Assembly: GCF_006345805.1 (NCBI RefSeq) | Contig: NC_043024.1 | Span: 12,214,001 to 12,278,000, forward strand | Length of the DNA stretch: 64,000 nucleotides | Reading direction: 5' to 3' | DNA from: Octopus sinensis | Taxonomy: Eukaryota | Shown here: positions 18,301-62,884 of the stretch, in pieces | How positions within the stretch are numbered: the stretch's first letter is position 1 | Layout of the letters: every line of letters begins with the position of its first letter | Translations under genes and position numbers: made by a program | Notes under the pieces: generated by a model | Told to the model about the DNA's origin: nothing | What the model saw: the letters and a program-made list of their open reading frames with translations, nothing else | The model's database searches: none

Positions 18301-18302
18301 TG

Positions 18303-18479
18303 GATATATATATATATATGTGTGTGTATATATATATGTTTATATATATATATATATATATGTGTGTATATATATATATATGTATGTGTATATATATATG
18401 TATGTATGTGTATATATGTATGTATGTATGTATGTATATATATATATACACACACACACACATATATATACACACATAT

Positions 18480-18530
<51 letters not shown>
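18303..18530. repeat. (TA)n/(TG)n/(TATG)n microsatellite
   Basis: Directly visible. Confidence 0.95.
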
Positions 18531-18532
<2 letters not shown>

Positions 18533-31431: not shown

Positions 31432-32410
31432 TCACGAAATACAAGGCTAACGAATGTGAATTGACTGCAGCAGTCTCGCTGGTCCAACGGATCGAAGAGC
31501 TCCAATCGAACAAATTCATCCCCAGGACTTATTGATTGTATGTGTTTGACGAACCTCTATGTTACAGGGACATAAAGAAACAAGCACCGTTTGTTAAGAG
31601 GTGTAGGGAGACAAACACACATATATACCTTTCGGCTGTTTCAGTCATTACAGTGCGGCCATACTGGGGCATAGCTTTGATTTTTTTTTTTATCAAATGA
31701 ATCAACCTCAATACTTCTTTTTTAAGCCTGGTTTTTATTCTATCGATCTCTTCCCAACACTGGTTGTCAAGTAGGGGTGGGGGAACAAACATAGACGTGT
31801 ATACATACATATATACAACAGTCTTCTTTCAGTTTCCATATAGCAAATTCACTGTCAAGCTTTTGCTCAGCCCCAGGATATAGTAGAAGACACTTGCCCA
31901 AGGTGCCCTGCAGTAGGAGAGAACCTGGAACCATGTAGTTGGAAAGCAGGCTTCTTCCCACACAGCCATGCCTGCACCTATAGCCACGTATGACATATCT
32001 TCTTTCAGTTTCCGTCTAACAAATCCACACGAGTATTTTGTTGTCCCAGGGCTATTAATTGAGAAAGCTATTCAATGAGACGACTACACCTGCATTTTGC
32101 ATGAAATTTGTCACAGGTAAGTTATCCAAAATGCTAATTACAATTAAGATGACGGAATTTTTTTAAAATCCAGTATTTTTATACTTGGACCACCTCGTTG
32201 CCTGGAAGTTGAATAAAAACTGTCTACACCGTTGTTGCTTGGATGGATGTTATGCATTTAAGGCTGGCTATGAATGATATAACACCAATAATTTAAATTT
32301 TATTTCACTGCACAAGTAACATTGTGGCTGGTCATGAATTATAAAAGTTCCACAATAAATCAACACAATTTATCATCAACGTCCATTTTCTATATTGGCA
32401 TGGGTTAGAC

Positions 32411-34042: not shown

Positions 34043-34599
34043 GAATCAGGTCATCAAGAATGAAATATTCTATTTTCAACTGAAACTTTATTTTATCTCA
34101 ACAAAAAGTAATGCACCTAAATTATCAACACAATTTTACCATTTTATTGGTAGCTTATTTATGCTAGCAGTGAAGAATTCTAGAGGGCAAGAGGTGACAC
34201 AAAATGTTTCCTTGCAAAAAATTGTCTAATGCCTGGAAAATGTGTCCGACAAATGGGAACAGGAAACTCTGAGTAACAGTTTAGTGTGCAGCTTTATTAA
34301 AGCATATTACTCTACCTCCAGGATTCAAGTATTATTTTTTCCACCTTGTTTCATGTCTATGTGCTTACACTGGTATATATATATATATATATACATATAC
34401 AGTATGTAATAACAAAATATTTTCTTTCATGATTTCGATATTTATTTTGAATATAACAGAACAACCTTCTGAGAATATATTTCTCACCTACAGACCAACA
34501 ATGTCCCATGAATCTAAAGTATATTTTGTCCTTTTTGGAAAATATCAGATGGAGTATATGTCAGTATTATAAAAGTCAGTGATTCTTTTGTTTGTATGA

Positions 34600-35778
34600 A
34601 GAAATAGTTGATAGTTTCCGTTACCTAGGTGACCAAGTCAGCAGTGGGGGCGGGTGTGCTGAAAGTGTAACTGCTAGAGTAAGAATAGCTTGGGCAAAGT
34701 TCAGAGAGCTCTTACCTCTGCTGGTGACAAAAGGCCTCTCGCACAGAGTGAAAGGCAGACTGTATGATGCGTGTGTACAAACAGCCATGCTACATGGCAG
34801 TGAAACATGGGCCGTGACTGCTGAGGATTTGCGTAAGCTCGCAAGAAATGAAGCCAGTATGCTCCGATGGATGTGTAATGTCAGTACTCACACTCGGCAG
34901 AGTGTAAGTACCTTGAGAGAAAAGCTGGACCTAAGAAGCATCAGTTGTGGTGTGCAAGAGAGACGTTCGTGCTGGTATGGTCATGTGGCGAGAATGGATG
35001 AAGATAGTTGTGTGAAAAAGTGCCACACCCTAGCGGTTGAGGGAACCTGTGGAAGAGGCAGACCCAGGAAAACCTGGGACGAGGTGGTGAAGCACGACCT
35101 TCGAACTTTAGGTCTCACTGAGGAAATGACTAGAGACCGAGTCCTCTGGAAGTGTGCTGTGCGCGAGAAGACCCGGCAGGATAAGTGAGTCCATAACCCG
35201 TGGCCTTCTACATGGGATGGAGCCAGCCTATGTATGCATACCTTCCCTTCTTGGGACACAAAATTCTACTTGTGAAGACCTGTTGAGGCAAGTGAGGATC
35301 AGAATCGAAATCGATCAATGGAAATTGCAGATGTGTTACCAGTGCCGGTGGCATGTCGAAACTCTACTTGTGAAGATCCGTTGAGGCAAGTGAGGATCAG
35401 AATGGAAATCGATCAATGGAAATTGCAGATGTGTTACCAGTGCCGGTGGCATGTAAGAGAACCTTCCGTTTCGCGACCGTTGCCAGCACTGCCCCGTTTC
35501 GTGTCCGTTGCCAGCCTCGCCTGGCCCTCGTGCCGGTGGCACATAAAAAGCACCATCCGTTCGTGGCCGTTTGCCAGCTCTGTCTGGCACCTGTGCGGGT
35601 GGCACGTAAAAAGCACCCACTACACTCACGGAGTGGTTGGCGTTAGGAAGGGCATCCAGCCGTAGAAACACTGCCAGATTTGACTGGGCCTGATGAAGCC
35701 TTCTGGCTTCACAGACCCCAGTAGAACCGTCCAACCCATGCTAGCATGGAAAACGGACGCTAAACGACGATGATGATG
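34600..35778 (+). mobile_element. 5'-truncated RTE LINE with intact ORF end and full 3' UTR
   Basis: ORF 34592-35188, repeated ggtggcacataaaaagcacc modules and a (gat)n tail. Possible TSD ATGAAGA at 34596-34602 and 35776-35782. Confidence 0.93.
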
Positions 35779-36226
35779 AAGACTCTGTTAAAGATGTTAA
35801 TTTTATTACATAAATTGACTTTGAAACAATGGTTTGCCCCATATACTACAGAGACATAGCTTTCTTTAATGAAGTGCTGCCATCAGAGAATGAGTTACCA
35901 CAAATGTCACAGTGACTTGGATGCATTTGTGAGCAGTTAGGATGATTATGTACTCATTCCAGTGAGTAAAGTAGAGAAATTTTGCTAGTAATCTTATTTA
36001 GAGCAAATATTTCACTATAATTCCTCACAGATTTACATAAGTGTCTGTTCAGTATAACATATACTTTTGATAATCAATATTGACGATGTGTCTGAAGTTT
36101 GTTACCATACTATTTTATTATCTGTGTATATAATGTATGTTTACATATTAGTTTCATAGAATGAGTTGTGACATCAATACAAATGTACAGTTAATTGAGA
36201 GGGTATTACAAAAACCATCAGTAATA

Positions 36227-37834
36227 TTACTTCTCTCCTGTATGAACGGATTTGTGTTTAGTTAAGTCCTTGATCTCAGAGAATGTCTTATCACAGGTAT
36301 CACACTCATATGGCTTCTCTCCAGTATGAATAGACATATGTTTCTTTAAGTTATTTGTTGTAAGAAATGATTTACCACAGATATAACAGCGATGTGGTTT
36401 CTCTCCTCTGTGAATTCGTTTGTGTTGTTTTAAGGTACTTCCTAGAGAGAATGATTTACCACAGATGTCGCACTGATAGGGTTTGTGTCTAGTATGAATG
36501 CGTCCATGATTAGTTAAAGTAGACTTTATAGAAAATGATTTGCCACAGATATCACACTGATATGGTTTCTCTCCCGTATGAATAGATGTGTGTTCAGTTA
36601 AGCTTTCTTTTTCACAGAATGTGTCACCACAAATCTCACAGCGATATGGTTTTGTTGTTTCGTGAATCTGCTTGTGCCTACTTAAGTTACTTTTATCAGA
36701 GAATGTCTTATCACAGACATTACAGTGAAATGGTTTTTCTCCAGTATGGGTCCGTACATGGTTAATAAGAATAAATTTTTGTGAGAATGATTTATCACAA
36801 AAATCACATTTATATGGTTTTTCTCCTGTATGGCTTTTTATATGCCTAGTTAAGTAAATAAGCTGAGGAAAAGATTTCCCACAGGTCACACAATGATATG
36901 GTTTCTCTCCTGTATGAACGTGTTTGTGCTGTTGTAAGACGCTTTTCACAGAAAATGATTTACCACAAATCTCACAGTGATATGGTTTCTCTCCTGTATG
37001 AATGCGTTTGTGATTAGTTAAGCTACCTTTTACAGTAAATGAATTCCCACAGATATCACAGGTATAGGGTTTCTCTCCTCTATGACGGCGTTTGTGATTG
37101 GCTAAGTAAGTGCTTACAGAGAATGATTTACCACAGATATCGCAGTGATACGCTTTCTCTTCTCCATGAATCTCTTTGTGATTACGTAAGCTACTTTTAT
37201 CAGAGAATGATTTGCCACAGACATCACAGTGATGTGGTTTTTCTCCAGTATGGGTCCGTACATGTTTAGCTAAAATATATGCTTGAGAGAATGATTTATC
37301 ACAGAAATCACATTTAAATGGTTTTTCTCCTGTATGACTTTTTATGTGTCTAGTTAAGTGAATAATTTGAGGGAAGGATTTACCACAGATAACACAGCAA
37401 TATGGTTTCTCCCCTGTATGAATGCGTTTGTGTTTAGTTAAGGTACTTCCATCGGAGAATGAATTACCACAGATATCACAATGATGTGGTTTCTCACCTG
37501 TGTGAACATAGTTGTGTCTAACTAAATGATGTTTATAAGAAAACGATTTACCACAGATTTTACAGCTATGTGGCTTTTCTCCAGTATGAATATATTTGTG
37601 TGAAGCCAAACTGTCTGCACGAGAAAACGACATCCCACACATATCACAGTGATATGGTTTCTCTCCGGTATGAATGCGTTGATGTGTAGTTAAGGTGTTC
37701 TTATCAAAGAAGGATTTACCACAAACATCACAATGACAGGGACTCACACATTTGTGAGTGGTGAGTGTCACGGCCTTAGAAAATGACTTTTTACACACAT
37801 CACACTTGTATAGCTTTTTTTTCTCTTTTGCCAT
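36227..37834 (-). CDS. C2H2 zinc-finger protein, cluster gene 2 (535 aa, 19 fingers)
   Basis: Intact ORF with TGEKPY linkers. Acceptor ttttgtttcag| at 38021. Confidence 0.95.
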
Positions 37835-39989
37835 GTCTCTCAGAACAGAGTGACTCCTTAAAATTTCTTGAAATTTTCTTCTTCCAAAATTTCACCAGAG
37901 GTTTACACAAACAAGGTCATATCTTCTGTGAAACATCCTCTTTCTTAAGCCTTTAGAAGATAATAATGATGATTTAAGCCTGAAGTTAAGAATTCATTTC
38001 TGCCAAGGTCGTCAAATGCTCTGAAACAAAAGAGAGACAGAAGATAACAAAAATATGGTTAACATTAAACTGTGGATATTCTCTAACTTTCTACATTAGT
38101 TTCAAATATTGGCACAAGGCCAGCAATTTCAGGGGAGGGTGTAAGTTGATTATATTGATCCCAGTGTTCAACTGGCCCTCATGCTAGTGGCACGTAAAAA
38201 GCACCCACTACACTCTTGTAAGAGCATCCAGCTTGCCAGATCAGACTGGAGCCTGGTGTAGCCTCCTGGCATGCCAGTCCTCAGTCAAACCGTCCAACCC
38301 ATGCCAGCATGGAAAGCAGACGTTAAACGGTGATAATGATGATATATAATATATTGCTATACCATAGAAAGTTTCGGTAAACTTTGTCACTCACTCTCTC
38401 TCTCTCTCTTTGTTTCTTTCTCTACAATTTCGGAAAATTGCAAAGGGAAACTGTTAGTGTTTCAAATCTATTCTGCAACCTGGGATTATTATTATATCCA
38501 GTGATTCTATCAAAAGATAATTTTGTTTTAATATACTTGTTTTATACACAAACTGTTTTTTTTTTTTTTTTTTTTTTTTAGATTATCTTTCTTTATCTCT
38601 CCACTGACTTCAGTACCACTCTAACTTCTATAAAGCATAACTAGATTTCTGTAGCCCCTGACTTTGGAAATATGGAAATTTTCTACGAATGTGTAATATC
38701 ATGTAGATTCCGAATATACAAAATTTTGGGAGGAGGTGGGGGATTTCGAAAAATTCACCGGAGTCCACTTCAATTTGCCTTAACTTTCAAGATAATGGAT
38801 ATTTTTTAATGATATTCTCTACAAATATACCTCGGACTATGTAGATTCCAAAGAGATAGGAATTTGGGGTGAAAGCAATCGGGGGTTATTTTTGAGAACA
38901 GTTCATTGCACGATTGTTGCTTCAGTAGAAATCTACGGATGGACAAAAATTTCCAATGATTTCGGGATGGGGGGGGGTCTAGTTTCCAACACACCCTTTT
39001 TTTTCCTAACAAAAATAAGGGGTTTGCAGCATATTAGGAGGTCAGGGAATTTGATTCCACGCAAAAAATCAGATTTTTTTTTTCTTGGTGAGAATCGTAC
39101 GGATGAAAGGAATCAAATAATAACGATTGTTCTTACACTTATATAAAGAACTTTGTACGAAGTGATCCACGGCTGATTGAAGGGAAGTTCTGGCGGTGAG
39201 GGGCAACTCCTTCGTCGAGTCCTTTAATGCATTGCATAAAAACATTATTTATCCATTCCTTTATTTATATTTTTAACAAATCAAGTCTCTACACACAATA
39301 CAACGAAAGTTATAACAATTCTAAAACAGTAGGTCCGTTGTTCCCTGAAAAATAATGCAGCTTCAGGAAAAACTATTGTAGGGGCGAATCAGTGTTGTAA
39401 AGGTTCGCATCTTACCCCAGGGGCTGCATCCTGATCATGACCCCCTGACTGATCTTCTGCTCTTTTTAGCCAATTGGATATCGGACACAATTTGTGCATT
39501 TAAACCGCCTTCAGAAATTTTTAGTCAAAAGAAATCGACTTTTTATCTCCTTTAAGTGGGGGGGGGGTCGGTCTTTTAGGCCGAACCGCTAGGTTACGAG
39601 GACGTAAACACCGGTTTCAAGCGGTGGTGGCGATCAAGCAGAGACAGTAAGACACACACACACACACGTATATGGTACTCACCTATATATTGTCTGTATT
39701 TTGTTGGGGAGTTTTTATATGCTTTCGGAAGAGATTGCAGATAGAAAATAAAACCCGAAGCTCTGAAAGAAATAAGGCTTACAGACGTGTAAGTCTGCCA
39801 GTCTCACTTATTCCAGCCATAAAACAACATCTAACCCCTAAATATGAGGGGTCAGATGGGGTGTTTGAACCAGAATCCCGCCAACCGCAGTCATTACGTA
39901 TCAAAACAAAGACTGGAATACGAGATAACATTTTAATTTAATGGTGCATATTACAGTCTTTGTTTTAATAAAGTAAATATATATTAAGA

Positions 39990-40212
39990 AACTGTAGATA
40001 AATACGATTACTTTACCATGAATATAAGCTTCATACGAAGTAGACTCTTCCTCTGATGAACCCGATTGTGATGACTTATTTCTCTGCTCGATCTCGGTGA
40101 AATGATACCATAAAGGAAGTATTTATTTACGCATGCGTATGGCGAACTAAACGGTTATACAAATGTAATTATGAACACATAGACGTATAACTACACTTTA
40201 GTGCTCCATCAA
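39990..40212 (-). promoter_or_regulatory. Promoter/non-coding exon 1 of gene 2
   Basis: Palindrome tacgcatgcgta at 40128-40139, donor CATG|GTAAAG at 40017/40016, and an upstream conserved acatagac..aactaca..tttag..ccatcaa block. Confidence 0.65.
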
Positions 40213-41439
40213 TGTATTTCCTTGCAGCCAGTTAGCAAAGTTGTCAGTATGCTGATCGAAATGTTTAACGGCCTTTCCTGCATCTTTACGTTCTGAGTTC
40301 ATATTCCGCTGAGGTTGACTCGGCCTCTTCTCTTTTCAGGGTCGATGTAATCTGCTAGTTCCCTTCCCTAAGTTTCTTTAGTAGAAAGTTTTACTTAATA
40401 ATGTATTTGGGATCTTCGCCTTTTGACCGACAGATTTAAAAAATAATCTTTTGTAACTAAACCCTTTTTTAAAACTGTCGGTCAAAAGGTAAAGATCCAA
40501 CATAAGATCTGGGTTTAGCTGCTATTTCTAAAATATTCAAGTGCTGGCGTAGTTTTTTGGTAAGTTTGCTTTCCAACCACATGTGCTTCGATTCAGTTCC
40601 CACCGTGTAACACCTTGGGCAGCTGTCTTCTATAAATGCATCACAGGACCAAACCATCGTAGTCTTTTCTCTTGCATTCTACACCTGGTTACTCTTATGC
40701 CTAATTTTTCGATAATTATCTTCACACTTTGTCATTAATGCACACTTGCAGTGGTTAAGGTGTCTATCAGAATGTGCTGAGGTAAACAGATGCGATAGGC
40801 AAGTGGATGCCTTCCAAGTAAATAATGAAATGACATCGATTTATAGTTTAAATAATTTATTTACGGGACTTGCACTTGCTGTTGGTATATACAATTTTCC
40901 ACTACATCAATTTGTTGCTAACTGCTTCGAGCTGGAGAAGAATTTCGACATATCTGTGTGTGTTGTTCATCGGAGAAAATACTGGTCGGCTGGGTCCCAG
41001 GTTTTTTCTACCTGTCCCTTTGCTGACCACGGTATTTATAACAGCCGTGGCAGCTAGAAAGACAGACATACTGCAGGAGAGATTGTGTCTAAATAGGTCA
41101 GCTCCTGTCCATTTGAAATTCGCCTGACATGGCTGAGGTCGTAGGTCAAAGGGAGACGATTTATAATTTTTTGACATGACAAAGAAAATTCTTTCGCGCC
41201 TGTTTGGTCAGTGGTGGCTCAGACGAGCGAGAATTCTTACATTTGGTTTCGAATCTAAGCTTGGAGAAAGGAAGTGTTAGTTTTTACACACTGATGTTGC
41301 ACATCCATCAGAGCTTGACCCTGCTTGAGATTTGAAATCAAATCCACCGACTTGTTGCTTGTCAAAACGAGTGGGAAATCTACACTAGATGATTGATGAG
41401 GAAACACTCCAGCCCTTAGGACCTGTGCTGGTCCTTTAA

Positions 41440-42185: not shown

Positions 42186-42299
42186 ATTACATGTATAATT
42201 ACGAACACATAGACGTATAACTACACTTTAGTGCTCCATCAACTTATTTCCTTGCAGCCAGTTGACAAAGTTGTTAGCATGCTGATCAAAATGTCCAAC

Positions 42300-43336: not shown

Positions 43337-44272
43337 TTAGTTCTTTCTCATATGAATGCATTTGTGTCTAGTTAAGTGAATAATTTGAGAGAATGATTTA
43401 CCACAGATATCACATTGATATGGTTTCTCCCCTGTATGAATACGTTTGTGTTGTTTTAAGTTACTTTCTACAGAGCATGATTTATCACAGATATCACAAT
43501 GAAATGGTTTCTCACCTGTGTGAACACGTATGTGACTAGTTAAATTACCCTTTACAGAAAATGATTTACCACAGATATCACATCTATATGGCTTCTCTCC
43601 TGTATGACTGCGTAAGTGATTGGTTAAGCAACTACTTACAAAGAAAGATTTACCACAAATATCACAGCGATATGGTTTCTCTCCCACATGAATCTGTTTG
43701 TGATTACGTAAGACACATTTATCAGAGAATGATTTACCACAGATATCACAATGATATGGCTTTTCTCCAGTATGGGTCCGTATATGTTTAGCTAAAATAT
43801 ATGTTTGAGAGAATGATTTATCACAGAAATCACATTGATATGGTTTTTCTCCTGTATGGCTTTTTATGTGTCTTGTTAAGTGAATAATCTGAGAAAATGA
43901 TATGCCACAGTTTTCACAGCGATATGGTTTCTCTCCTGTATGAATGCGTTTGTGTTTAGTTAAAGTACTCCCATCGGAGAACGAGTTACCACAGATATTA
44001 CAGTGATATGGCTTCTCTCCTGTATGAACATAGTTGTGTCTAACTAAATGATGTTTATGAGAAAATGATTTACCACAAATTCCACAGCTATGTGGTTTTT
44101 CTCTTGTATGAGTAAATCGGTGTGAATTTAAACTATCTGCACGAGTAAATGATTTACCACAGACATCACAGTGGTGGGAATTAATGCATTTGTGAGTGGT
44201 GAGTGTAACGGCCTTACAAAATGACCTTTTACACATATCACAGTTGTAGGATTTTTCTAATACTTTTGGCAT
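43337..44272 (-). CDS. C2H2 zinc-finger protein, cluster gene 3 (311 aa, 11 fingers)
   Basis: Intact ORF whose N-terminus is nearly identical to gene 1. Acceptor tctttatttcag| at 44489. Confidence 0.93.
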
Positions 44273-48039: not shown

Positions 48040-48490
48040 GGGTGCTATTTAAGAAGAGTGGTCCCGGTGCGCGCACTCGCGTACTCACGCATCCGCACTG
48101 GTTTGTCGTGACTAGTCGATCCTACAACGACCACCTATCCTATAACAAATGTTCATACAAAACCGGTTGAAAGTTATTAGAATAACGTAAAACGACGTTT
48201 TCAGAGTATGATTGGGGTAACAAAAACAGGTAGGGTGTTATTTATATTTCATTTCTTTAGAAAAAGAAATTTATTTACGTTGTTTAGAAAAAAAATATTT
48301 ATTTTGTTTTTAAAACCCCCTATTTGTTAAAAAAACCCATCTAAGTTATGATGGGGTACCAAACGTTTATCTAATAACTTCCAACCGAATCTGTATGAAC
48401 ATTTGTTATAGGATAAGTAGTCCTTTTGGATCGACTAATCGCGAGTGCGCGCACCGGACCACTTTTCTTAAATAGTACCAAAAAACTGCG
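48040..48490. repeat. Fold-back of ~150-bp inverted arms related to the PLE sequence at 23.3 kb
   Basis: 48040-48190 is approximately the reverse complement of 48360-48490. Both arms contain gtggtcc(c)ggtgcgcgcactcgcg..gact(a)..tcgatcc, as at 23305-23365. Confidence 0.75.
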
Positions 48491-48679
48491 AATGTCAGTG
48501 TGTCACACATTTTCAACTTTATTCCTAGACGCTGTGGCCCAACAGGCCAACTCCGAGAGTAAATTAAAAACATTCCGGGCCGAATCAGGACCCGCAATCC
48601 TGAAATTTTGAATTCAAGACTTTTCAGTACTGCGTTTTTTTTTTTCCGTGATTTTTGCGACGAATTTTTGGTAAAGAAG

Positions 48680-48861
48680 AGTGGACCCGACGCGTGCACC
48701 CGCACTAATCAGTGGACCCGACGCGTGCACCCGCACTAATCAGTGGACCCGACGCGTGCACCCGCACTAATCAGTGGACCCGACGCGTGCACCCGCACTA
48801 ATCAGTGGACCCGACGCGCGCACCCGCACTAATCAGTGGACCCGACGCGCGCACCCGCACT
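48680..48861 (+). repeat. CpG-rich 31-bp tandem repeat (~5.9 copies)
   Basis: Unit agtggacccgacgcg(t/c)gcacccgcactaatc, with no spacers. Confidence 0.97.
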
Positions 48862-50374: not shown

Positions 50375-50494
50375 TTGAATTTATGGAATTTCATCAACTT
50401 CAGTTTCTATCATAATTTATTTATACTTTTACCGTAACACTAAACTTCAGGTTAGCTAACAACACATACTTGCATTATAATTTGAAGAAAGCAA

Positions 50495-50710
50495 GTCGAT
50501 GGGGCACTAAAGTGTAGTTATACGTCTGTTTTCATACCTGTATTTGTATAACTGTTGCTGTTATTTCATTGTACGCATGATATTGTTATTTTCTATCGGG
50601 TTTGTTTGGGAGAAATTTGTTTTTTATTATGATCAAGTTCGTCGATAAACTCCCTATTTTGTATTCACGGTAAAGGAATCATATTTACCTACTGTTTCTT
50701 AATATATATT
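50495..50710 (+). promoter_or_regulatory. Inverted fifth copy of the ZNF promoter/exon-1 module
   Basis: gatggggcactaaagtgtagttatacgtct matches the gene 2 upstream block. The NRF1 site is degenerate (tacgcatgatat at 50572). The donor is CACG|GTAAAG at 50669/50670, followed by atttacctactgtttcttaatatatattt. Confidence 0.7.
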
Positions 50711-51581
50711 TTTTCTTTCTATATTATGTGATTGTGTTTCGTTTGGGCGATTGTATATCTTATCGGCTAAATTGAGTATTATGTCTATGTGGTAATCTTA
50801 GGAGTGGCTGTGTGGTAAGTAGCTTGCTTACAAACCACATGGTTCCGGGTTCAGTCCCACTGCGTGGCACCTTACGCAAGTGTCTTCTACTATAGACTGT
50901 GTTTTTTTTTCTCAGTGGAGTCCAACTCAGCAAAAATTATTTAAAAAAAAATATCAGTCAGATCATTCTAATTTTTTTTTGATTTTTTGCATTTTATACT
51001 TACAACTTTTTTCTAAGATAAAATAGTAGTACACAAATTTTGGGTTTTTTTATAGTGTCTTTATGTCTCATTGCAATAAAAATAAAATATACAAGTTAAA
51101 GTAAATTTTGATCAGTTTTTTAATCTAAAAAAGCGATAATCCTTTTCTCTTTTGAAGCTTCTTGTTTCAAAAGGTCGCGAAAGTAGAGAGGAAGCTGAGT
51201 CAATTGACTCTTTTGTCATTTTGTGGGTAAATGAAAACTTGAAAAATGTTACCAAGTTTTAATTTTGTTTTTGATGAATCAACAAAAATCTAGCAATGAA
51301 TTTAATAACAAAATTATATTCTAGTTTACTTGTTTATGTGAATTTCTTAAAAATTATTTTAAAGCAATGGAATTAATAAATGGATAAAAATGTTACCTTT
51401 TAACCACACAAAATCAAATTCACTGCTAAAGAATTCTGAATAGTGGTCACATGATTAAATTCCATGAGGTAATAGTGACTTTTGACCTCTGAATAGGCAG
51501 TTAAGAATTTAAGCAGGATAAAGAATTGCTTTACTACTCCCTGTTTTGACCTTTTTTTTTTTTTCTCTTTTCACTCCCTAG

Positions 51582-51591
51582 AAAACAGCAG
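51582..51591 (+). other. Candidate 10-nt microexon
   Basis: ttttgac + cttttttttttttctcttttcactccctag|AAAACAGCAG|GTGAGT. Confidence 0.45.
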
Positions 51592-52341
51592 GTGAGTTGT
51601 CTATCTTTTGAATTCCCCAAAGGCATGCAAGTATATTTGCTTTCTTTAGTGGTCCTACAATGCCAATCCTTTTATTAATAGCTGCTGATCAATTCAATTC
51701 ATTCTAATTACAGAAGTGTTCTCTTGGACAGTCAGAAGCAAATCTTTTTCTGCATTTTGTGTCTGTTTAGGGATCAAAAACCATAATTCATTCATGCAAC
51801 CACAACCCAGAGGGAAACAGAAAAATAAATTCATAGGAAAGTTAAGATAATAAATAATTAACTTTACATGAAACCAAAATTTATTTATTATAGAAAAGGA
51901 AGGCATGCAATGCATCCGTTCCATACATAGATGCCTCGTGTCTGTAGTGCTGACCACTTCCCAGCACCCACACCACACTCAATCTTCAATAGTATCACCA
52001 CACATGAGTAGTCGCATGTTACAGATGCACACACACTTACACACCCAGACTTGTTAAAAACTTTACAAAGTCACTGCCCCCTCCCCATTCACACACACGC
52101 TTTTCAGTTAGGGGGTCACCTTCAATGTATTATCAGCCTTTTTTCCAACCTCCTTTTCTAATCAGTTGCCATGCTTGATTGCTAAATCTACAGATTTTTC
52201 TAATTCTCTCTTATTCCTTTCGGTTGAAAGGCTTGAAACATAGTCTTTTTCATTTTTCATATTCCCAAATGTCAAACTTAATACACCTGCTTGTTGTTCA
52301 AACACCTGTCTTCATTTTTTGTTTTTTCTATAAATTTCATT

Positions 52342-52378
<37 letters not shown>

Positions 52379-52716
52379 GTAATATTCTAGGTTTCATAGA
52401 ATGAGTTTTGACATCAATAAGGTTATTCTTCTCTTTTGCAATTAATAAACATTTTTTTTTTTTCATAGAGTGATTTACAATTGATACCACATGAGTTTCT
52501 CTACATGTTGTGTAGTTGAGTGACTATCTCTTGAGTATGCTTTACCACAAATATCACAGTGTCATGGTTTCTCTTCATGTCTGGTGAAGATATCTCCATC
52601 AGAGAAGGATTAATCAAAGACATCTGAGTGATACAGCCTTTCCCCAAGAGAGTGATTTACAACAGTTGATCCAGGATGAATGTTTTGTTGAAGTATTTCA
52701 GTGGGAAAAGGATTTC

Positions 52717-54327
52717 CTACAAACACAGTGGTTCTCCAGTGTGTCTAAGTCTGTGGTTTTTTAACAAACAATTTTCAAAGAATGATTCATGGCAGATATC
52801 ACATTGATATGGTTTCTCACCTGTATGATAAAGCTTGTGTTTTTTTAAGAAACGATTTTCTGAGAATGATTTACCACAGATATTACAGTGGTATGGATGT
52901 TCTCCTGTGTGATTAAGCTTGTGTTTTTTTAAGAACCGATTTTCTGAGAACGATTTACCACAAATGTCACAGTGAAAAGGTTTCTCGCCTGTATGAGTAC
53001 GTTTATGAACTTTCAAGTTACTACTTACAGTGAATGTTTTACCACAAATATCACAATTATATGGTGAATCTCCTGTATGAATGTACATATGTCTATTTAA
53101 GTTACTAGCAATGGAAAACGATTTACCACAGATATCACAGCGATGTGGCTTCTCTCCTGTGTGAATACGTTTGTGTTGAATTATGTTACTTTCAATAGTA
53201 GATGAATAACCACAAATATCGCACTGATATGGTTTCTCTCCTGTGTGAATGCGCGAGTGTTTTTTCAAGGAACTTCTTACAGAGAATGATTTACCACAGA
53301 CATCACAGCGATATGGTTTCTCTCCTGTATGACTGCGTATGTGATTGGTTAAAGCTCTACTTTGAGAGAACGATTTACCGCAGATATCACATTGATGTGG
53401 CTTCCCTTTAGTGTGGATCTGTTTGTGATCACTGAAGACACTTTTATCAGAGAATGACTGACCGCAAATGTTACAGTGAAATGGTTTTTCTCCAGTATGG
53501 ATCAGTTTATGTTTGGTAAAGGAACCCCTGAAGAAGAAAGATTTCCCACACATATCACAGTGATAAGGTTTCCCTCCTGTATGAACATAAGCATGCGCAT
53601 TCAAGGCACTTCTTTCAGAAAAGCCATCACCGCAAACATGACAGTGGTAAGGTTTCTCTCCTGTATGAACATATCCATGAGCAACTAAAGCACATTTTTG
53701 AGAAAATCCATCACCACAAATATCACAGTAATATGGTTTCTTTCCTGTATGAATATACTTATGAGCAGCTAAGAGGTTGTTTTGGCAGAATGATTCACCA
53801 CAAATGTCACAGTGATATGGTTTTTCACCAGTATGGGTTCGTACATGTTGTGCTAAAGTATATGCTTGAGAGAATAATTTATTACAGACATCACATTTAT
53901 AGGGTTTTTCTCCTGTGTGACTAGTTATATGTCTAGTTAAGTGAATAATCTGAGAGAATGATATACCACAGATATCACAGCGATACGGTTTCTCCCCTGT
54001 ATGAATACGTTTGTGTTTAGTTAAAGTACTCCCATCGGAGAATGAATTACCACAGATATCACAATGATGTGGCTTTGCTCCAGTATGAACATAGTTGTGT
54101 CTAGCTAAATGATGTTTATGAGAAAAGGATTTACCACAGATGTCACAACTATATGGTTTCTTTTCTCCCGTGTGGCTATATTTGTGTGAAGCTAAACTAT
54201 CTGCACGCGAGAATGATTTACCACATATGTTGCAGTAATGGCATCGGTGTTTGGTGAGTGTAACGGCCTTAGAAAAGGACTTTTTACAGATATTGCAGGT
54301 GTATAATTTTTGCATTGTTTTTGCCAT
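52717..54327 (-). CDS. C2H2 zinc-finger protein, cluster gene 4 (536 aa, 19 fingers)
   Basis: Intact ORF. Acceptor ttgtttcag| at 54892. Confidence 0.95.
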
Positions 54328-54355
54328 GTTTTTACAAAAACACTCATTCTTTTAA

Positions 54356-54540
54356 CCCATTAATATTCAGATTACTTTGTCAAATGCAATGCTTATTTAT
54401 TCAATTTTGAATTAATCATGCATTATATTGTAGCTTCAAAATTTCAATGACGTGTGTGTTTATTTTTGGGTGATAGAGGCTAATCTAAAACAGGTAGACT
54501 ATTTGGGGCCAGATATGGCTGGTTTAAACCACCTAAAGGG
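54356..54540. mobile_element. piggyBac-type MITE in the putative 5' UTR of gene 4
   Basis: TTAA|CCCATT... and ...AAAGGG|TTAT termini. Confidence 0.7.
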
Positions 54541-54921
54541 TTATGTGTCTCAAATATTGTTTCGATATTTTTTCTCTCACCATAATAAATTAGCAGTTTT
54601 CTTATTTCTGTTTTTATAGTTCGTTGGTAACAAATATTTCTTTTGCTATATTGCCATCATTTGTGATCTGTCAATATCCAAAGATGGTGCAAATTGCTTT
54701 GTAAATTTATCCCTATTTGGAAAAGAGAAATTTTCTAGGAATCACAGGACTAAAGAAACAGTTTACCATCCGTTTACATAAAAAAGGGTTTTATGTTTCT
54801 TCTGCACAACATTTTCCTTTAATCTTGAGAAGATGGTAATGGTGATGCTTCTGAAGTTAACGATTCTCTTCTCTCAATGTCATCTGATGTTCTGAAACAA
54901 TAAACAAACAAAATAACATAT

Positions 54922-55440
54922 ATGAGGTGCATTCCAGAAGTTTTGAGATTTTTTAAAAGGAGATGCGGTTACAACTCGCTTAGATTATTGTAATTTTAGT
55001 ATCTCATTACTATCAGTGGTGGGCATGGTTTGTTTAGTGGATTGGCACTTTCACTAACTTTGGAAACCATTAGCAGACCAATTAGACGTTTGTTCCGGTC
55101 TGTTGTGGGCATGTCTCGAAGAGCCCATCAGGCACACTATTGGCTGACTACGTGTACACATGATTGGTCGATGCAGCAGCAGCAGAGAGTGCAATTCTGC
55201 AGTTTTGAGTTGTGTTCACTTACGATGTTGTCGCATTACAGACAGTCGTACAGTGTCACTGACAGTGGTGTGTATTATCAGCTTATCAAGTTATCATTAT
55301 GGAAGGTGAAGACATTTTTGTTCAAGCTGAGGATGAAGGTCCAGTTTAGGAGTCTGCAACAGCTGTGGATGAGGCAGAGGTCACTCAGGTGTAGAGCCAA
55401 AGGTTGTGTAATGTTTAAGACTTTAGCAACAGCATGACAT
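54922..55440 (+). mobile_element. Decayed mariner-like 5' fragment in the gene 4 intron
   Basis: TA-tgaggtgcattccagaagttttgaga TIR-like start and a QQQRVQF relic of the EQR..IKF transposase start. Confidence 0.5.
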
Positions 55441-57399
55441 CATAGTTGTGTTGGCCGTTTTCGTTTTTTGTTTATAAATGTCTTACATTTTTTTCATTGG
55501 TCAATTTTACTGTCCATACATCGATTCTAATCTTTGTGATAAGTTTCTTTTCCATGAAGAAAGTTTCTTAGAATCAGGTTTATAAAAACCCTGATTTTTG
55601 GGAAATTATTCAGTGACCTTTGATTTGCCATATGGGACCTTGGCTTTGGTCAGCCCGAGGCTATTGTAGAAGACACTTGCCCAAGGTGCCATGCAGTGAG
55701 ACTAAACCCAGAATCATGTGATTGGAAGGTAAGCTTCTTACCACACAGCCACACGTGCACCCCGTAGGAGAAATTATGATAAACATGTTTATATCATTTA
55801 ACCCGTACCCCGTCCTAGCGCGGGAAACGGACGTTAAACGATGATAATGATGATGTACGTTTCACCGTTGTAGTTGTTTGGAACCCCAGCACTGGACGTT
55901 TGAAATGCCATTGGGCAGAAGTCTGCTTTAAATGCACAAAATAACCCTTCATAACTTTTTCATTTTGAGGAATTTTCAGAAACTTTTTGCGAATTTCGAT
56001 TGTGTAAATATGATTATGCAAAACAAAAGGAAAAAAAAAGATTTTTTGTGTGATTTAAGGGGGTATTTAGCTGTTATTTTTAGCCCATCTCACGACAACC
56101 AAAATACCCACCTCCTTCGTTTGTCAATCTGACGTATCGATGTTTTTCAATATCTTTCTCGTCATAAATATATTGAATAGTCTATTGATGGGATTTAATA
56201 AAAAAAATAAAATTATGACTGTCCATATTTGAAATTGAATTAAATTTATTTTTCATAGTCGAATGAATTCCCGTGTGTAGAATACAAATTCGCAAACATT
56301 TTCTGAAAATCCCCAAAAATAAAGAGTTATGAAGTGGGTATCTGGCGTGCTTAAAGAGAATTCCTCCACACATCTTACTGTTTGTCGAAGATGACCAGTT
56401 TGCAGAATGTATTTAGGACACGAAGATAATATAGAAGCTTGCCATGCAACAGAGGTTTGTGTTAAAAATTATGATAGAAGAGCAAATGTGGGAGGGAAAA
56501 TGACGATAAACAAGTTTATGGCATTTGTTGAGGATTGTTGTTGCTTGAAATCTGCTCTGGATGTTCCGAGTGCAATCGGAGGCTGAACCACAACAGACCA
56601 TCGATGGTATTATTCTTTATTGCATTAAGTGATGCAGTGAAAAAGTATTTCCTGGTTTGTTGTGAATCACTCGGAACATCCAGGATTGTGGTTCCCAACA
56701 AACACAACAGTGAAACATACACAGGAAGATTAATGATATAAACTAGGGTTTATCGTGATTTCTTATATACAAATGTGTGTCTGAAGGTGCATGATTGCCC
56801 AGTGGTTAGGGTGCTGCACTCATGATCGCTGGACCGTGGGTTCAATCCCTGGATGCGTTGTGTTCTTCGTTTCTTGGTTCTCTGCCATCAATTCGAGACC
56901 AGATGTTTGGTAAGACTATACAACTGTTCGGGTAAGGTCGATCTGATGGGGTGAGTGAGCTAATTAATGAACACCACATACATTTGATCATTCCCCAAAA
57001 AATCATTTGCGCAAAAACTGAACAATTCAGACGTTGTCGAGAGATTCCACCACACATACACACACATATATATATATATATAATGACGATCTTTGGTTTA
57101 TATATATATATATATATATAAACCAAAGATTGTCAATTTTCTGCTGCAAAATCGTAAGGAAGACCATCTAAAATGGTATCTCTAGAGAATTTAATTAATA
57201 AAGCATGTATTTTAAAGTTATGGGGGCAAAACAAAGTGTAATTACGGTTCTGTATTCTCCTCTGAGTAAATGGAGAAAGGGTCCTCGTGAAAGGAGTGCA
57301 ACAAAGGGAGAGGTCGTCGTCGCTTTGCCAGGTGAGCAGAAGCATTATCAGGAACGATGCAGGAGATAAATATAATATAGGAAATAAATATTATGAAAC

Positions 57400-57600
57400 C
57401 GTGGATAAGCATGATTACTTTACCATGACGTACAAAGTGGACGATTTCTGCGATGAACGGGATTAGGATTAAAGAATTTTTCTTAAAATAATCTTCGGAG
57501 CATCAAAGAACCCATGTCTGTTTGCGCATGCGCATGACGAAATGTTTTCTATTGACAAATAAGTACACATAGACACAACTACAGTTTAGGGCCCCATCAA
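57400..57600 (-). promoter_or_regulatory. Promoter/non-coding exon 1 of gene 4
   Basis: Perfect TGCGCATGCGCA at 57523-57534, donor CATG|GTAAAG at 57424/57423, and the upstream acatagac..aactaca..tttag..cccatcaa block. Confidence 0.7.
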
Positions 57601-57949
57601 TTTTATTTCTTCCTAATTTGAATATCTTTTTTTTTTTTACTTGTCTTAGTCATTAGACTGCGACCATGCTGGAACATACTGTCTTGAAGGGTTTTAATCG
57701 AATAAATCGACCCCAGTACTTAAAAAAAATTCTTTTTAAAGTCTGGTGCTTATTATATTAGTCTTTTATTGCTGAAACGCTAAGTAACAAAGACGTAAAC
57801 AAACCAGCACCAGGTATCAAGCAGTGTTAGAGGACAAAAACATAAACGCAGGTGTGGCTCTATGGTAAGCAACTTGCCTACTGTGGTCTTGAGCCATGTG
57901 AGTCTATTCGGTAGACGGAAACTGAAAGACTGTCGTGTGTGTATATAAA

Positions 57950-58262
57950 GGTAAGGTAAAGACCCCCTTCGGTCATGAATGACCATGGGATTGCACCTAG
58001 AAAGTTACCCTCCTAGACACAAGTCCGGGCAAGGTTGTTTATGGAAGACCAGCAGTCGCCCATGCATACCAGCCTCCCCTCTCCACGCCACCAGTGTTAT
58101 CCAAGGGAAAGACAAAGGTCGATACGGCTTGGCACCTGTGACGTCGCAACTCATTTCTACAGCTGAGTGAACTGGAGCAACGTGAAATAAAGTGCCTTGC
58201 TCGAGAACACAACACGCAGCCCGGTCCGGGATTCGAGCTCACAACCTCACGATCGTAAGCTC
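57950..58262 (-). mobile_element. Near full-length tRNA-derived SINE
   Basis: The head (reverse complement gagcttacgatcgtgaggttgtgagctcgaatcccgg) is B-box-like, and the element has a (ccttta)n-like tail. Confidence 0.75.
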
Positions 58263-60699
58263 ATATATATACGAGAGAGAGAGATTCGTATTTGTCTCCC
58301 GCAATCACTTGACAACTGGTACTTAATTTATCGACCCCGAAACGATGAAAGGTAAAGTTGACCTCGGCGGAATTTGAACTCAGAACGTAGCGGCAGACGA
58401 AATACTGCCAAGCATTTCTCCCGTCCTGCTCGTCGCCTTTTTCCTGAAAGAAAATTACCAGAGAACTTTCTTCCGAATCTTTCTGTTAACAATTGCAATC
58501 TGTTCATTGCAGGTTGAATGCTGAGTCAAATCGAAAGAAAACCGTTTATTCGTTTCTTTTCGTCATTGAGTATTGGGGTGGTTGTGAGGTGTGCTAAAAA
58601 TAACAGCTAAATAAGATGTTTTGAGTAAATCTTTTAAACTAACATAAATATTTAGTTACATGCGACATAACACGTGTTGTTGGATCTTTTCGGTTTGAAC
58701 GGCACTCTACAGAAATTATCAAAATTTACTCCAGGTTAATAATTAAGGTCCCTTTAAGCCCTAAACTATAAAAGATGCTGAAGGACTTGTTAGAAGTTGA
58801 AAGTAGAGTTAACTCCCCTTGTCCCGATTCTCTTCATTTCCTGCTTTTGTTTCGTCTCTTAATTATGCGATCGGTTTCACTTTACAACTGATATTTATAA
58901 GAAAACCCACTTAAATATACGCATGATTGGTAATTAGTTGTGTAAAGAAATAGACATAGCATTCTTTATTATGTTGACCTGAAAAATATTAATTCAACGT
59001 TTGCTGTAAAAATCTCTTGAAGCTGTCCAAGTCTTGAAGTTCTGACCAACATATTGTCACATCTTTCTAATTAGCTTTCCCCAAGTTAATATGTAAGTAT
59101 CATATTTATATAAACATTTATATTGTATTCGCGTTATTTTACGTAATTCCGTTTGTTTTGATTCACTAGAATTTCAAATGGACAAGATTCTCTGGAAGAT
59201 AACATTTTCGTCTGTAATAAAGATAAACAATTCATACATTTATATCTTTATATATTTATATGTTGCTGTGGGAGTGTCAGATCTGGTTTTAAACATATAA
59301 AGGTACAAATAGTAAAATAAGTGAATATTCGAAACTGAAAATATACCCAGTTTCTGTTAATATACGTTGCGACATAAAAAAAATCATATAACAATAATAA
59401 TCGTTTCTATTAAAGGCAGAAAGCTCGACATTTTGAGGAGGAGGATGCTCGGCGATTGCATCGACACCAGTACTTGAGCACTTTATTTCATCGACTCTAA
59501 AAACATGAAACGGCTTAAAGACAGACGAAAAGCCGCTAAATAATAATAATGGGACGAGATAGGAAAGTAATGGTGATACCGGTGGTTATTTAAGCATTAA
59601 GAGCAGTTTTCAAGTGTCTTGAGAAATATATTAAGAATATTGGAACTGCTGTCAGGCTCGAAGTGATCCAGAAGACAGCATCGTTGGGTACAGGTCGCAT
59701 TCTAAGAAGAGTATTGTCTCTGAGTTAGAGGAGAAGGCAATACTTGAAACCTTTGGTGATTTGTTATTGCCTGCTTTCAAATAAAGAACAACCTCAAATA
59801 GAACAGCGAGAATCAAAACAATAATAATAATATTCTAGCAGAAATGTATATCTGTTGAATTACATAATGTATTTGAGCTAAACGATGTGCAAATAATTGG
59901 CCTTTTAAATTATGTAGATATTATAGGTGATGGTTAGTCTTATGGGTAAATTTTGATACTTTCACCCACACGATTTTCACTACGAAAAAAAAATCGCATT
60001 TTTTGCGTGGAATCAAATAGCCTGAACTAATATGCCGCAAACCCCTTATTTTTGTTCAGAAAATAGTGGGTGGGGTGGGGGAGGAACCAGACTTCCTCCT
60101 ATCCCGGAATCATTGGAATTGTTTTTTCCTTTGAATGAATTATTTGAATGAATTATGCCACAAAACCTTATTTTTGGTCTGGAAAAGGGGATGAGATGGG
60201 GTGGAATCCTCGGAAATTTCACCCCCACACCCGTTAGGAAGTGTACCTGCACAAAGAAAGAAAAAACTGATTTTTTGCATACAATCAAGTACTCTGATCT
60301 AACCTGCCAGAACCCCTTATTTTTGTTTGGAAAAAAGGGTTGGGTGGGAAACCAGATCACCCCCACCCACCATATCCTGGAATCATTGGAAATTTTTTTT
60401 GTTTTCGTTGAATGAATTACGGTGACCTCCTAATATGCTACAAACCTCATTTTTTGGTCCAGAAAACGGGCAACAGGTCTTGCATGGCTGAGGCAGTAAT
60501 GCTAGTGCATTAATTACAGTGCACAGTATTGAATATGCCACAAATTAAGGCAGTAAAGCTGAGGCTGCCAACCGATGCATGAGGTATTATATGCTTCGAT
60601 CCTGCAGGAGCGAAAGTGTGGCATACTGGTGCATTGTAAGGGACAAACAACTTTCCCTATGTATGCATGACTGACCTAAGGTCTTACAGAGACAAGTTA

Positions 60700-60900
60700 T
60701 GTTTACAAGGGCGCAGGGAGCATGCAAAACAAACGAGAAAGGCATGTGTTTGGGCATGAACGTGATAGAGTTGGTGTAACAATGTGTGCAGATGTGTGCA
60801 GAAGACCAGGCACTTAGGAATGGTGCATGCAAAGAAAGCAATTGCAGACATTGAAAAGGAGGACATTTAGCAGAAACCATGGAATAAAAACAGGTGAACA
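60700..60900 (+). mobile_element. Gypsy gag zinc-knuckle relic
   Basis: Frameshifted DVCRRPG(H)..ACKESNCRH*KGGHLAET is a double CCHC knuckle pattern. Confidence 0.4.
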
Positions 60901-61399
60901 ATGCGTATGCAGTGCAAACATAACAAAATAAAATAAGCAAAAATGACAAACTTGGTTAGAAAGTGTTCTGGTCCTGAAAAGCTAAAAAGTAGCATTTGAA
61001 ATGCAAAGTAAATTCAAGTCTATGGCCGTTGAAAACGTTGCATGTGTGGGCTCCCATATTATCTTCCAATTTCTGGGCATGTAGCTGTCGAAATGATGCA
61101 TTTATTGGCTGCCATGGTCGGCAAATTCCTTGTGCGTCTGCAGTGTTGCATTGTTGTGAAGTGCATCATAATGTGGATAGTAGTAGAGAGCTTTTTGTAG
61201 CGGGTTGAAGGTGGGTGCATCTTGATGGAGATGAAGGTTGTCATTATTTTGCCTTTGGTCTAGCGACTGTTGATATGAAGACTACAGTTCTTTTTTAAGC
61301 TGAGGTAGTGAGGAAAAGATAGCAGCTAATGTAGCTCCACAAGGCAGCAATTCTTTTTTAAACGGGGTCACCAATTTGTAAATTGGTGCCTGTTATGGT

Positions 61400-62165
61400 G
61401 CAACGTCAGGATTACCAATTTGTAACAGTAGAAGTTAATTAGTGTAACGGTTGAGTTACCAATTTGTAAGGGTAGAAGTTTATTTTTGTAATGGTTGAAG
61501 TTTAATTTGTAAACAATAGTATGGAACATCTGAGTCGTGATCAGTTTGTAACGATTCTTCATTGATTGCCATTATGTAAAGGTGAAAGAACAGTGATTGA
61601 GGTTGTAAAGAAAATATTTATTTTACCATTATATTGTAAAATACCTTGCCTCAACGGGCAGGTGATAAAATCGTAAAGCACACAAAGTAAAGGTAGATGT
61701 AGATTTTCCTTGTATAGTTTGTGTTCTTGTCATTGTGTAGTAGTAATTACAGATAGGAATATTGATGTAAGAGAAAATAAAGTGAGAGTGAGAGAGTGTG
61801 GGATGAAACAACTGCTTCGTTGGTGGGTTACCATGGTTGTCCTTTTGTGCTTTTTTCTTCTGAGACAGCGTTTTGTTCAGCCAGTCAGCCAGACTCGGTT
61901 TTCAGTAACTGACTTTTGCTTGAGGGGTTCTTGTTTTTATAACTATCCAGAAGGATAGACATATCATTGAGAACAATAGATTTCGTTGGTGGTGCTTGTT
62001 ATCTTAATTCTAGCTTTTAGTAGTCTAGGAGAGGTTAGAAGGGTCAAGTGGTGAAGACATTATTTTGCTTAGCTAAGGCATCTGGCAAATGTAAACTGCT
62101 GTCAGAAAAACTATTGTTTTACCGTGAGAAAAGTGCAGTTGAACTGTTAATTTAAATTTAGCTAT
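61400..62165 (-). mobile_element. Old Penelope-like relic, same family as 8720-9250 and 11560-11930
   Basis: Nucleotide similarity to 11720-11930. Decayed ILLDSYKNKNPSS and a PC..RCSC-like motif. Confidence 0.45.
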
Positions 62166-62884
62166 CTAGGATTGAATTCACACTATACCTGCATGATTCA
62201 CAACACACACACACACACACATATATACGTGAGTCAACTAAGAGTCCATAACTCGGAAAAGATGCGTTTGTGTAACTGTCAATGGAGTGGGTATATTATC
62301 CAAAGTGTACAGTGTTATAAGTCCATCATGGCTGATCTTACCAATCGGTTTCATGCCAGGTGTACAATGGAGTGTTAGGTAACAATCCAATTATATAACC
62401 TTTTGCTCATCTCATTTGAATCTAATTTACTCAACTCTCTTCTTTTATTCTGTTTCTCTTTCATTTCAGAACATCAGATGACATTGACAGAAGAGAATTC
62501 TTAACATTACATTCATCATTGCTATTATCTTTTAATGATGAAGGCAAGATGTTATGCTGAACAAATATAATCCTGTTCACATAAATCCCTGGTGGATTAC
62601 ACTGAATTATTTCTTCTGAGTGAGATTGAGAAAGAATTATCTCTGTTTCAATGTGTGGAACATGAAAGAGATGGTTTAGTTTTAATTCAATTTCTACAAA
62701 TTTACAAAAGAATTTTCACCATCTTCAGATTATCAAGAAAAACCACAGAAGATGAAAATACTGCAGTAGAAACATATTTCTGATGATTAAACTATAGAGA
62801 CAAAAACAAGAAAATATCTATTGTGACGAGAGAAGAAAAGTTCTACTGAAATGAATTGAAAATTCATTTTTCTTTCCTGAAGAG

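Follow-up and report, generated by a model that had tools for sequence, protein, structure and literature searches.

A zinc-finger gene of Octopus sinensis may lie antisense within the first intron of its own paralog

Genes that lie in an intron of a host gene, on the opposite strand, are common in animal genomes; OMG, EVI2A and EVI2B in an intron of human NF1, F8A in intron 22 of F8, and many pairs in Drosophila are well-known examples. Tandem zinc-finger clusters are a second point of reference, and the genome of Octopus bimaculoides, described by Albertin et al. in 2015, is reportedly marked by a lineage-specific tandem expansion of C2H2 zinc-finger genes. A third is the palindromic promoter element of the NRF1/EWG/P3A2 type, which is established knowledge, as are the bidirectional promoters built on such an element. 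Here we analyzed a 64-kb stretch of Octopus sinensis chromosome CM016886.1 (assembly GCA_006345805.1), hereafter the window, which contains 5 paralogous poly-C2H2 zinc-finger (ZNF) open reading frames (ORFs) with one exon apiece, 4 on the minus strand (g1 to g4) and 1 on the plus strand (g5). We examined the 5' part of g5, whose first exon may lie on the far side of g4. Positions are those of the window (window x is given as record x + 12,214,000), and exon boundaries throughout the cluster are predictions from paralogy and splice consensus. The 5 genes are the following:

26466-27821, minus strand: g1 ORF, single exon
36227-37834, minus strand: g2 ORF, single exon
43337-44272, minus strand: g3 ORF, single exon; short, with 311 amino acids and 10 fingers
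52717-54327, minus strand: g4 coding sequence (CDS), single exon; 536 amino acids, 19 canonical C2H2 fingers; the same product is annotated in GCA_006345805.1
62885-64000, plus strand: g5 CDS, passing the window end; the full ORF has 471 amino acids and 14 canonical fingers, with its stop at window-equivalent 64300

The genes encode arrays of C-x2-C-x12-H-x3-H fingers joined by TGEKP-type linkers, with 10 to 19 canonical fingers per gene. They also share their structure and their flanking non-coding blocks, because 5 upstream modules and 5 acceptor/5' untranslated region (5'UTR) exons align among the paralogs (identity 55-79% in the non-coding parts and approximately 70-77% in the ZNF exons). 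The upstream module, found by self-BLAST and alignment, is a paralogous block of approximately 300 nt situated 2.0-3.3 kb upstream of g1 to g4. It contains ATTTCgtcATaCGCATGCGCAAAC (the NRF1-type palindrome), a conserved TTATnATAATCnnGTTCATCG block, and ...tcATG|GTAAAGTAATCATATTTATCTACTGTTTC, which we read as a 5' splice site. An nhmmer profile made from the five-module alignment and run over the window found exactly 5 full modules (E from 2.6e-79 to 2.8e-59), one alone of them on the plus strand, and a partial copy; there were no further significant matches in the 64 kb:

50440-50740, plus strand: fifth copy of the 5' module, full length (nhmmer E = 2.3e-63, profile positions 3-338)
40268-39933, 57657-57337, 31520-31225 and 47849-47580, minus strand: the other 4 full copies (nhmmer profile)
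42186-42294, minus strand: partial module, the upstream third (profile positions 7-111), 90% identical to 40158-40264

A sequence-only reading of this DNA had named a plus-strand module with its donor at 50669 as the only one on that strand and had seen no promoter module between 57.6 and 62.4 kb. The profile search agrees on both counts, as it found neither a module nor a module relic on the plus strand in 57.7-62.4 kb. The partial module sits between the g3 coding exon and the g2 module and has neither the NRF1-type site nor the donor.

At the other end of the implied introns, self-BLAST and alignment identified a paralogous acceptor and 5'UTR in front of each ZNF exon, consisting of a pyrimidine tract followed by TTTCAG|AACATCAGATGACATTGACAGAAGAGAAT. 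In g5 the acceptor reads ...CTCTTTCATTTCAG|AACATCAGATGACATTGACAG at 62469|62470 and aligns with those of g4, g3 and g2, which bears out the paralogous acceptor proposed earlier at 62469; the g1 acceptor has a 12-nt deletion relative to its paralogs and retains TCAG. A profile search of the 64 kb with the acceptor/5'UTR block returned exactly 5 copies, one for each ZNF ORF, and one weak relic (36014-36099, minus strand, E = 4e-4) just 3' of the g2 stop and beside a fragment of a long interspersed element (LINE) at 34.6-35.7 kb. This relic may be what is left of a sixth gene unit that has been lost. No acceptor or acceptor relic was found on the plus strand between 50.7 and 62.4 kb, in keeping with the earlier claim that the plus-strand module meets no ZNF exon until 62470. 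The cluster thus holds 5 modules and 5 ZNF exons, with a single module and a single exon on the plus strand and no other partner for either. Therefore, pairing the plus-strand module with the g5 exon is the most economical arrangement, and it would nest g4 in the first intron of g5; we rate the chances of this reading, which is drawn from sequence comparison, as about even. The parts of g5 concerned are as follows:

50440-50740, plus strand: putative promoter, non-coding exon 1 and conserved 5' part of intron 1; would supply the first exon of g5
50573-50579, plus strand: half-site ACGCATG of the NRF1-type palindrome; 9-nt deletion at 50579/50580, alignment columns 153-170
50667-50675, plus strand: putative 5' splice site of the module, ACG|GTAAAG; the junction ATG of the paralogs is ACG, and their T at intron position +7 is G
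50670-62469, plus strand: proposed intron 1 of g5, 11,800 nt, joining the paralogous donor to the acceptor and enclosing all of g4
62381-62884, plus strand: g5 acceptor region and exon 2 5'UTR; the predicted exon starts at 62470

The conservation of the plus-strand module argues for this pairing. When each module was left out in turn and scored for the columns that are otherwise invariant, the plus-strand copy retained 67 of 84 (80%), compared with 79% for the module of g1, 81% for g2, 82% for g3, and 87% for g4. Global pairwise identity among the modules is just 53-67%, and outside the conserved blocks the intron interiors no longer align among the paralogs. Conserved blocks that are kept while the surrounding sequence has become unalignable indicate that the plus-strand module has been under purifying selection for most of the time since the copies diverged. 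Because it is as conserved as the 4 modules that lie at the usual distance from their coding exons, it is unlikely to be a long-dead orphan. The donor core G|GTAAAG is invariant in all 5 modules, together with most of the approximately 45 conserved intron bases that follow it. The sequence at the donor is ...TTCACG|GTAAAGGAAT in the plus-strand module, where exon 1 ends at 50669, and ATG|GTAAAGTAAT in the 4 paralogs, where it ends at 57424 (g4), 47671 (g3), 40017 (g2) and 31310 (g1). The first approximately 45 intron bases (GTAAAGTAATCATATTTATCTACTGTTTCnTAATATATATTT; 50670-50715 and equivalents) are the best-conserved part of the whole module, more so than the putative exon 1, which points to an element that acts in splicing or near the promoter, or else to a donor located further downstream than assumed here. 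The g5 side is well kept too: its acceptor region, taken together with the beginning of exon 2, retains 88% of the otherwise-invariant columns, the highest value of the 5 genes. With this acceptor and an intact ORF of 471 codons and 14 fingers, g5 resembles a functional gene and appears to need an upstream donor.

The implied first introns of the paralogs measure 3276 nt (g1), 1996 nt (g2), 3182 nt (g3) and 2532 nt (g4), whereas the interval 50670-62469 spans 11,800 nt, so that the 11.8-kb intron proposed before, set against 2.0-3.3 kb in the paralogs, has the size claimed. The g4 unit is made up of these parts, with boundaries again predicted:

57337-57657, minus strand: g4 5' module; exon 1 would end at 57424 (ATG|GTAAAGT); perfect GCGCATGCGC at 57524-57533
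54892-57423, minus strand: g4 intron 1, 2532 nt
54328-54891, minus strand: g4 exon 2 5'UTR; acceptor TTTCAG|AACATCAGATGAC at 54892|54891
52356-52716, minus strand: g4 3' flank, with decayed fingers at 52509-52646, homology of 52356-52419 to the g2 3' flank, and the first poly(A) signals at 51884, 51880 and 51671

All parts of g4 are on the minus strand, and the 50440-50740 module and g5 are on the plus strand. If the host model holds, the g4 unit lies wholly inside 50670-62469, with its module reaching to 57657, its CDS at 52717-54327 and its poly(A) signals at 51884-51671. The expectation that the joined interval would contain all of g4 and its promoter in antisense was thus correct. The zinc-finger-like DNA at 52509-52646, which is 3' of the g4 stop codon and part of the 3'UTR, indicates that the g4 array was formerly longer.

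In the arrangement that we propose, g5 would have the two-exon layout of its 4 minus-strand paralogs. A non-coding first exon (50440-50669), driven by the family promoter module, would be spliced from the donor at 50669 to 62470, where a large exon carrying the 5'UTR and all the fingers begins, and intron 1 would extend from 50670 to 62469 (11.8 kb) within the 5'UTR. In this intron g4 (approximately 51.7-57.66 kb) would sit in antisense as a complete unit that has a promoter, an intron and poly(A) signals of its own. Its likeliest and simplest origin would be the placement of the g4 unit in the g5 first intron by duplication or transposition. We also considered an origin from a head-to-head pair by a single inversion and rejected it on logic: the order plus-strand module, minus-strand g4 ZNF exon, minus-strand g4 module, plus-strand g5 ZNF exon keeps both orientations, and an inversion would have reversed one of the two, the module or g4. 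Paralogy, position, orientation and conservation are direct observations for all parts. What we infer from them is a role of the module as promoter and exon 1, splicing of its donor to 62470, and continued activity of the module despite the loss of a half-site and of the junction ATG.

Several observations weigh against this arrangement. The palindrome GCGCATGCGC occurs with at most 1 mismatch 3 times in the 64 kb against 0.2 expected, at 31421, 47786 and 57524, all in one column of the module alignment. It is perfect in g4 and g3, has 1 mismatch in g1, and is replaced by the palindromic variant ACGCATGCGT in g2; the palindrome or its 8-nt core thus stands at one fixed position, approximately 100 nt upstream of the donor, in 4 of the 5 modules. 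The plus-strand module has no match to GCGCATGCGC with at most 1 mismatch and is alone among the 5 in having lost the second half of the palindrome, through the 9-nt deletion. The sequence-only reading had called this NRF1 site degraded and had seen ACG in place of the junction ATG, and the alignment confirms both. Together with a T to G change at intron position +7, the module departs from the family at 3 plausibly meaningful positions, which could mark an orphan that is starting to decay. The last change may bear on splicing: U1 can pair with GTAAAGTA in the bulged register GTAA(A)GTA, and the T-to-G change would weaken this pairing. Orphan fragments do exist in the cluster, namely the partial module at 42186-42294 and the 5'UTR relic at 36014-36099. 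The proposed intron is 3.6 to 6 times as long as those of the paralogs and contains 20 sense-strand AATAAA sites. On a generic matrix the family donor is weak (0.83 bits, versus 1.55 for the plus-strand copy), and 25 of the 329 plus-strand GT sites in 57534-62400 score at least as high as the donor of the plus-strand module. Because so many GT sites score equally well, donor strength cannot discriminate between the possible starts of g5. The identity matrices of the modules and of the exon 2 5'UTRs are star-like and do not reveal a history shared by the plus-strand module and g5. Finally, the deposited gene calls are CDS-only and partly chimeric, and the g4 and g1 products are on genome records only. 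Taken together, the nesting of g4 in g5 proposed by the sequence-only reading is favored by the pairing and by conservation; donor strength is indecisive, half of the palindrome is lost, and the alternatives that were named with the proposal, an antisense non-coding transcript over g4 or bidirectional use of the g4 palindrome, still stand.

These 2 alternatives belong to the explanation that survives best next to nesting, in which g5 starts at a non-paralogous site between the g4 promoter and 62470 and the plus-strand module is an orphan or drives a non-coding antisense transcript over g4. A structurally possible variant is divergent initiation at the palindromic GCGCATGCGC site of g4, with a donor borne by a short interspersed element (SINE) at approximately 57.85-57.95 kb and an intron of approximately 4.5 kb. 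We regard this explanation as a whole as a real possibility, although a less probable one than nesting. Being perfectly palindromic, the g4 site at 57524-57533 has no orientation, and the following block lies beyond the g4 module:

57840-58430, no strand assigned: SINE/repeat block, CpG-rich, with plus-strand donor-like sites at 57852, 57865, 57898 and 57951; candidate alternative first exon of g5

The 4 donor-like sites are 320-420 nt from the g4 palindrome and, at 4.8-7.3 bits, score far higher than the family donor, but they lie in transposable-element (SINE) sequence and their frequency is within chance. The loss of half the palindrome from the plus-strand module and the orphan module and 5'UTR fragments elsewhere in the cluster fit a start of g5 at another place. 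However, 57.7-62.4 kb has no conservation to the 5' end of any paralog, none of the other 4 genes has a divergent partner, and a non-paralogous start leaves unexplained why a full-length plus-strand module is as conserved as the working ones.

It is also conceivable, but unlikely, that g5 was recently silenced when a rearrangement set g4 between its first and its coding exon and cut off the promoter, so that the plus-strand module and the ORF are relics that have not yet decayed. The 3 changes noted above, in the NRF1-type half-site, at the junction ATG and at position +7 of the donor, would suit such a history, as would the degenerate terminal fingers of g5 (...YRSDIYGKLF..., without both cysteines); degenerate fingers are, however, likewise found beyond the g4 stop codon, and the overall divergence of the plus-strand module is no greater than that of the other modules. 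Moreover, 471 codons with 14 canonical fingers are open in an AT-rich genome, and the acceptor region of g5 is the best conserved of the 5. Last, a misplaced or misjoined segment, with the true plus-strand module 2-3 kb upstream of g5, is highly improbable: tandem ZNF clusters with SINEs and microsatellites are prone to misassembly, but the window is free of N runs and so has no assembly gap flanking g4, the paralogs (55-79% identical in non-coding parts, approximately 70-77% in ZNF exons) are too diverged to confuse a long-read assembler, and over the neighboring 21 kb the O. sinensis and O. vulgaris assemblies are collinear, with 98-99.3% identity.

Returning to nesting as the preferred arrangement, the interval that would form the g5 intron contains further features outside g4:

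50804-50898, plus strand: tRNA-like SINE, 135 nt downstream of the donor; the family is also present at 55642-55761, 31862-31978, 25216-25333 and 6217-6328 (self-BLAST)
51582-51591, plus strand: candidate 10-nt micro-exon put forward in the sequence-only reading; a long pyrimidine tract and AG, then CAG|GTGAGT; no paralog has it
59952-60470, plus strand: element of approximately 180 nt in 2 to 3 tandem copies; elsewhere in the window present only once, within the g2 intron (38941-39117), and oriented as a paralogous intron would be

The donor of the candidate micro-exon scores best among the plus-strand donors in 50.7-57.5 kb. The approximately 180-nt element, on the g5 side of g4, weakly suggests a remnant of the old g5 intron; alternatively, it is a low-copy repeat. 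Rfam and tRNA scans of the window gave no matches, indicating that no RNA gene is hosted in the intron. Hidden promoters at the CpG-rich segments at 48.4-48.9 kb and 58.0-58.4 kb were considered and rejected, as the sequence there consists of tandem repeats and SINE-like elements. The first of these segments falls within a CpG-rich block at 48045-48861 (G+C approximately 0.53, CpG observed/expected approximately 1.5) that contains an inverted-repeat pair (48106-48188 and 48363-48444) and approximately six 31-nt tandem units (CAGTGGACCCGACGCGTGCACCCGCACTAAT, 48680-48861); it looks more like a miniature inverted-repeat transposable element or a satellite than a promoter. The window as a whole is 37% G+C and has abundant tRNA-like SINEs, TA/CA microsatellites and reverse-transcriptase ORFs. 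LINE-type retrotransposon fragments are located at 16258-18762, 24322-25056 and 34592-35188, with RVT_1 matches at 16972-17919 and 24673-25056, and ORFs at 13881-14654 on the minus strand resemble a Tc1/mariner-type transposase and have no Pfam match.

The predicted spliced leaders of the genes were compared as well. Exon 1 ends in ATG in all 4 minus-strand genes (for example at the junction 57424|54891). Across the spliced junction this ATG would open a four-codon upstream ORF (uORF) in g4 and g3 (ATG|AAC ATC AGA TGA; M-N-I-R/G-stop) and junction-spanning uORFs of other lengths in g2 and g1. A second short uORF, from the ATG in CAGATGAC, is present in all genes except g2. No junction-spanning ORF of the kind that gene callers could plausibly record on transcript contigs appeared meaningful, and a scan of metagenome contigs for the spliced exon 1-exon 2 junction produced 1 match, a chance one in unrelated sequence. 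In the 5'UTR, a segment of approximately 170 nt is common to g4 and g5 (54568-54708 on the minus strand and 62650-62840 on the plus strand) and absent from g1 to g3, and g4 carries an additional insertion of approximately 190 nt ahead of its ATG. Since the g4 coding sequence is nearest to those of g1 and g3 (76-77%), the segment shared by g4 and g5 is more likely ancestral and lost in g1 to g3 than indicative of a sister relationship between g4 and g5.

Pfam searches matched g4 and g5 to zf-C2H2 and zf-H2C2_2 (E = 1e-73 to 1e-137) and to no families other than those of C2H2 type; neither protein has a KRAB (PF01352) or SCAN domain, and the ORFs begin directly with a finger. Protein searches with full-length g4 and g5 were dominated by vertebrate poly-ZNF proteins, with the best-scoring matches at approximately 45-55% identity and no octopus protein among the matches listed. 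A 109-amino acid N-terminal query matched only short, non-orthologous octopus ZNF proteins on other chromosomes. In exact look-ups, none of the 5 products was in the cluster collection, and the g2 and g3 products were not on record. The GCA_006345805.1 gene models look artefactual: a 675-amino acid model begins at the g3 ATG and extends to the g2 stop, another begins at the g2 ATG and extends to the g1 stop although its product is exactly the g1 protein, and the g5 model has a 30-nt gap that drops 10 codons. In O. vulgaris, OX597840.1 (36303511-36324866) is collinear with and 98.1-99.3% identical to window positions 16.5-37.9 kb and ends at g2, and the g1 protein is identical in the 2 species. 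Because the O. vulgaris locus is limited to this part and so nearly identical, it is uninformative on the 50-64 kb region and on constraint. A literature search found no reports specific to the locus.

If the plus-strand module is active, the g5 pre-mRNA would be antisense to all of g4, g5 would have no four-codon junction uORF of the kind found in g4 and g3, and its response to the palindrome-binding factor would probably differ. Nesting would then be mainly a correction of the gene model, in which g5 acquires a 5'UTR intron of 11.8 kb and a promoter situated beyond g4. In that case g4 and g5 would be an obligatory sense-antisense pair, and antisense reads over g4 would be g5 pre-mRNA, which affects how expression in the cluster is read. 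It would also be an example of rearrangement in a tandem zinc-finger cluster of cephalopods. The arrangement itself is well known in animals and opens no new question, and RNA-based annotation of the locus probably exists already. RNA editing of the A-to-I type is very active in octopus, and a regulatory switch can be imagined, although we think it very unlikely: transcription from the 50.5-kb module in antisense through g4 and its promoter would make g4 and g5 mutually exclusive by transcriptional interference, co-transcription would yield kilobase-long double-stranded RNA as a substrate for A-to-I editing or small-RNA pathways, and the loss of the half-site and of the junction uORF would give g5 a regulatory input unlike that of the rest of the cluster.

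The locus can thus be set beside 4 known systems. Like NRF1/EWG/P3A2-type promoters, 4 of the 5 modules carry the palindrome or its core at a fixed position; unlike them, the plus-strand module has one half-site alone, and factor binding and start sites in octopus are putative. The cluster resembles vertebrate KRAB ZNF clusters in its tandem, fast-evolving poly-zinc-finger genes and TGEKP linkers, but g4 and g5 are without KRAB, SCAN or another effector domain and the 5' exon is non-coding, so that the similarity is one of finger repeats only. As in intronic nested genes, a complete guest (g4, with its putative promoter, intron and poly(A) signals) would sit inside a host intron on the other strand. 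Here, however, host and guest are paralogs of one tandem family, the host intron would be in the 5'UTR, and the host transcript is putative. The cluster is also like the octopus C2H2 expansion, with poly-C2H2 genes that have all fingers in one exon, interspersed SINEs and LINEs, and signs of birth and death in the form of partial modules, decayed fingers and truncated arrays. The difference is that 4 of the genes are in tandem on one strand and the fifth is a lone gene on the opposite strand whose first exon appears to be displaced to the far side of its neighbor.

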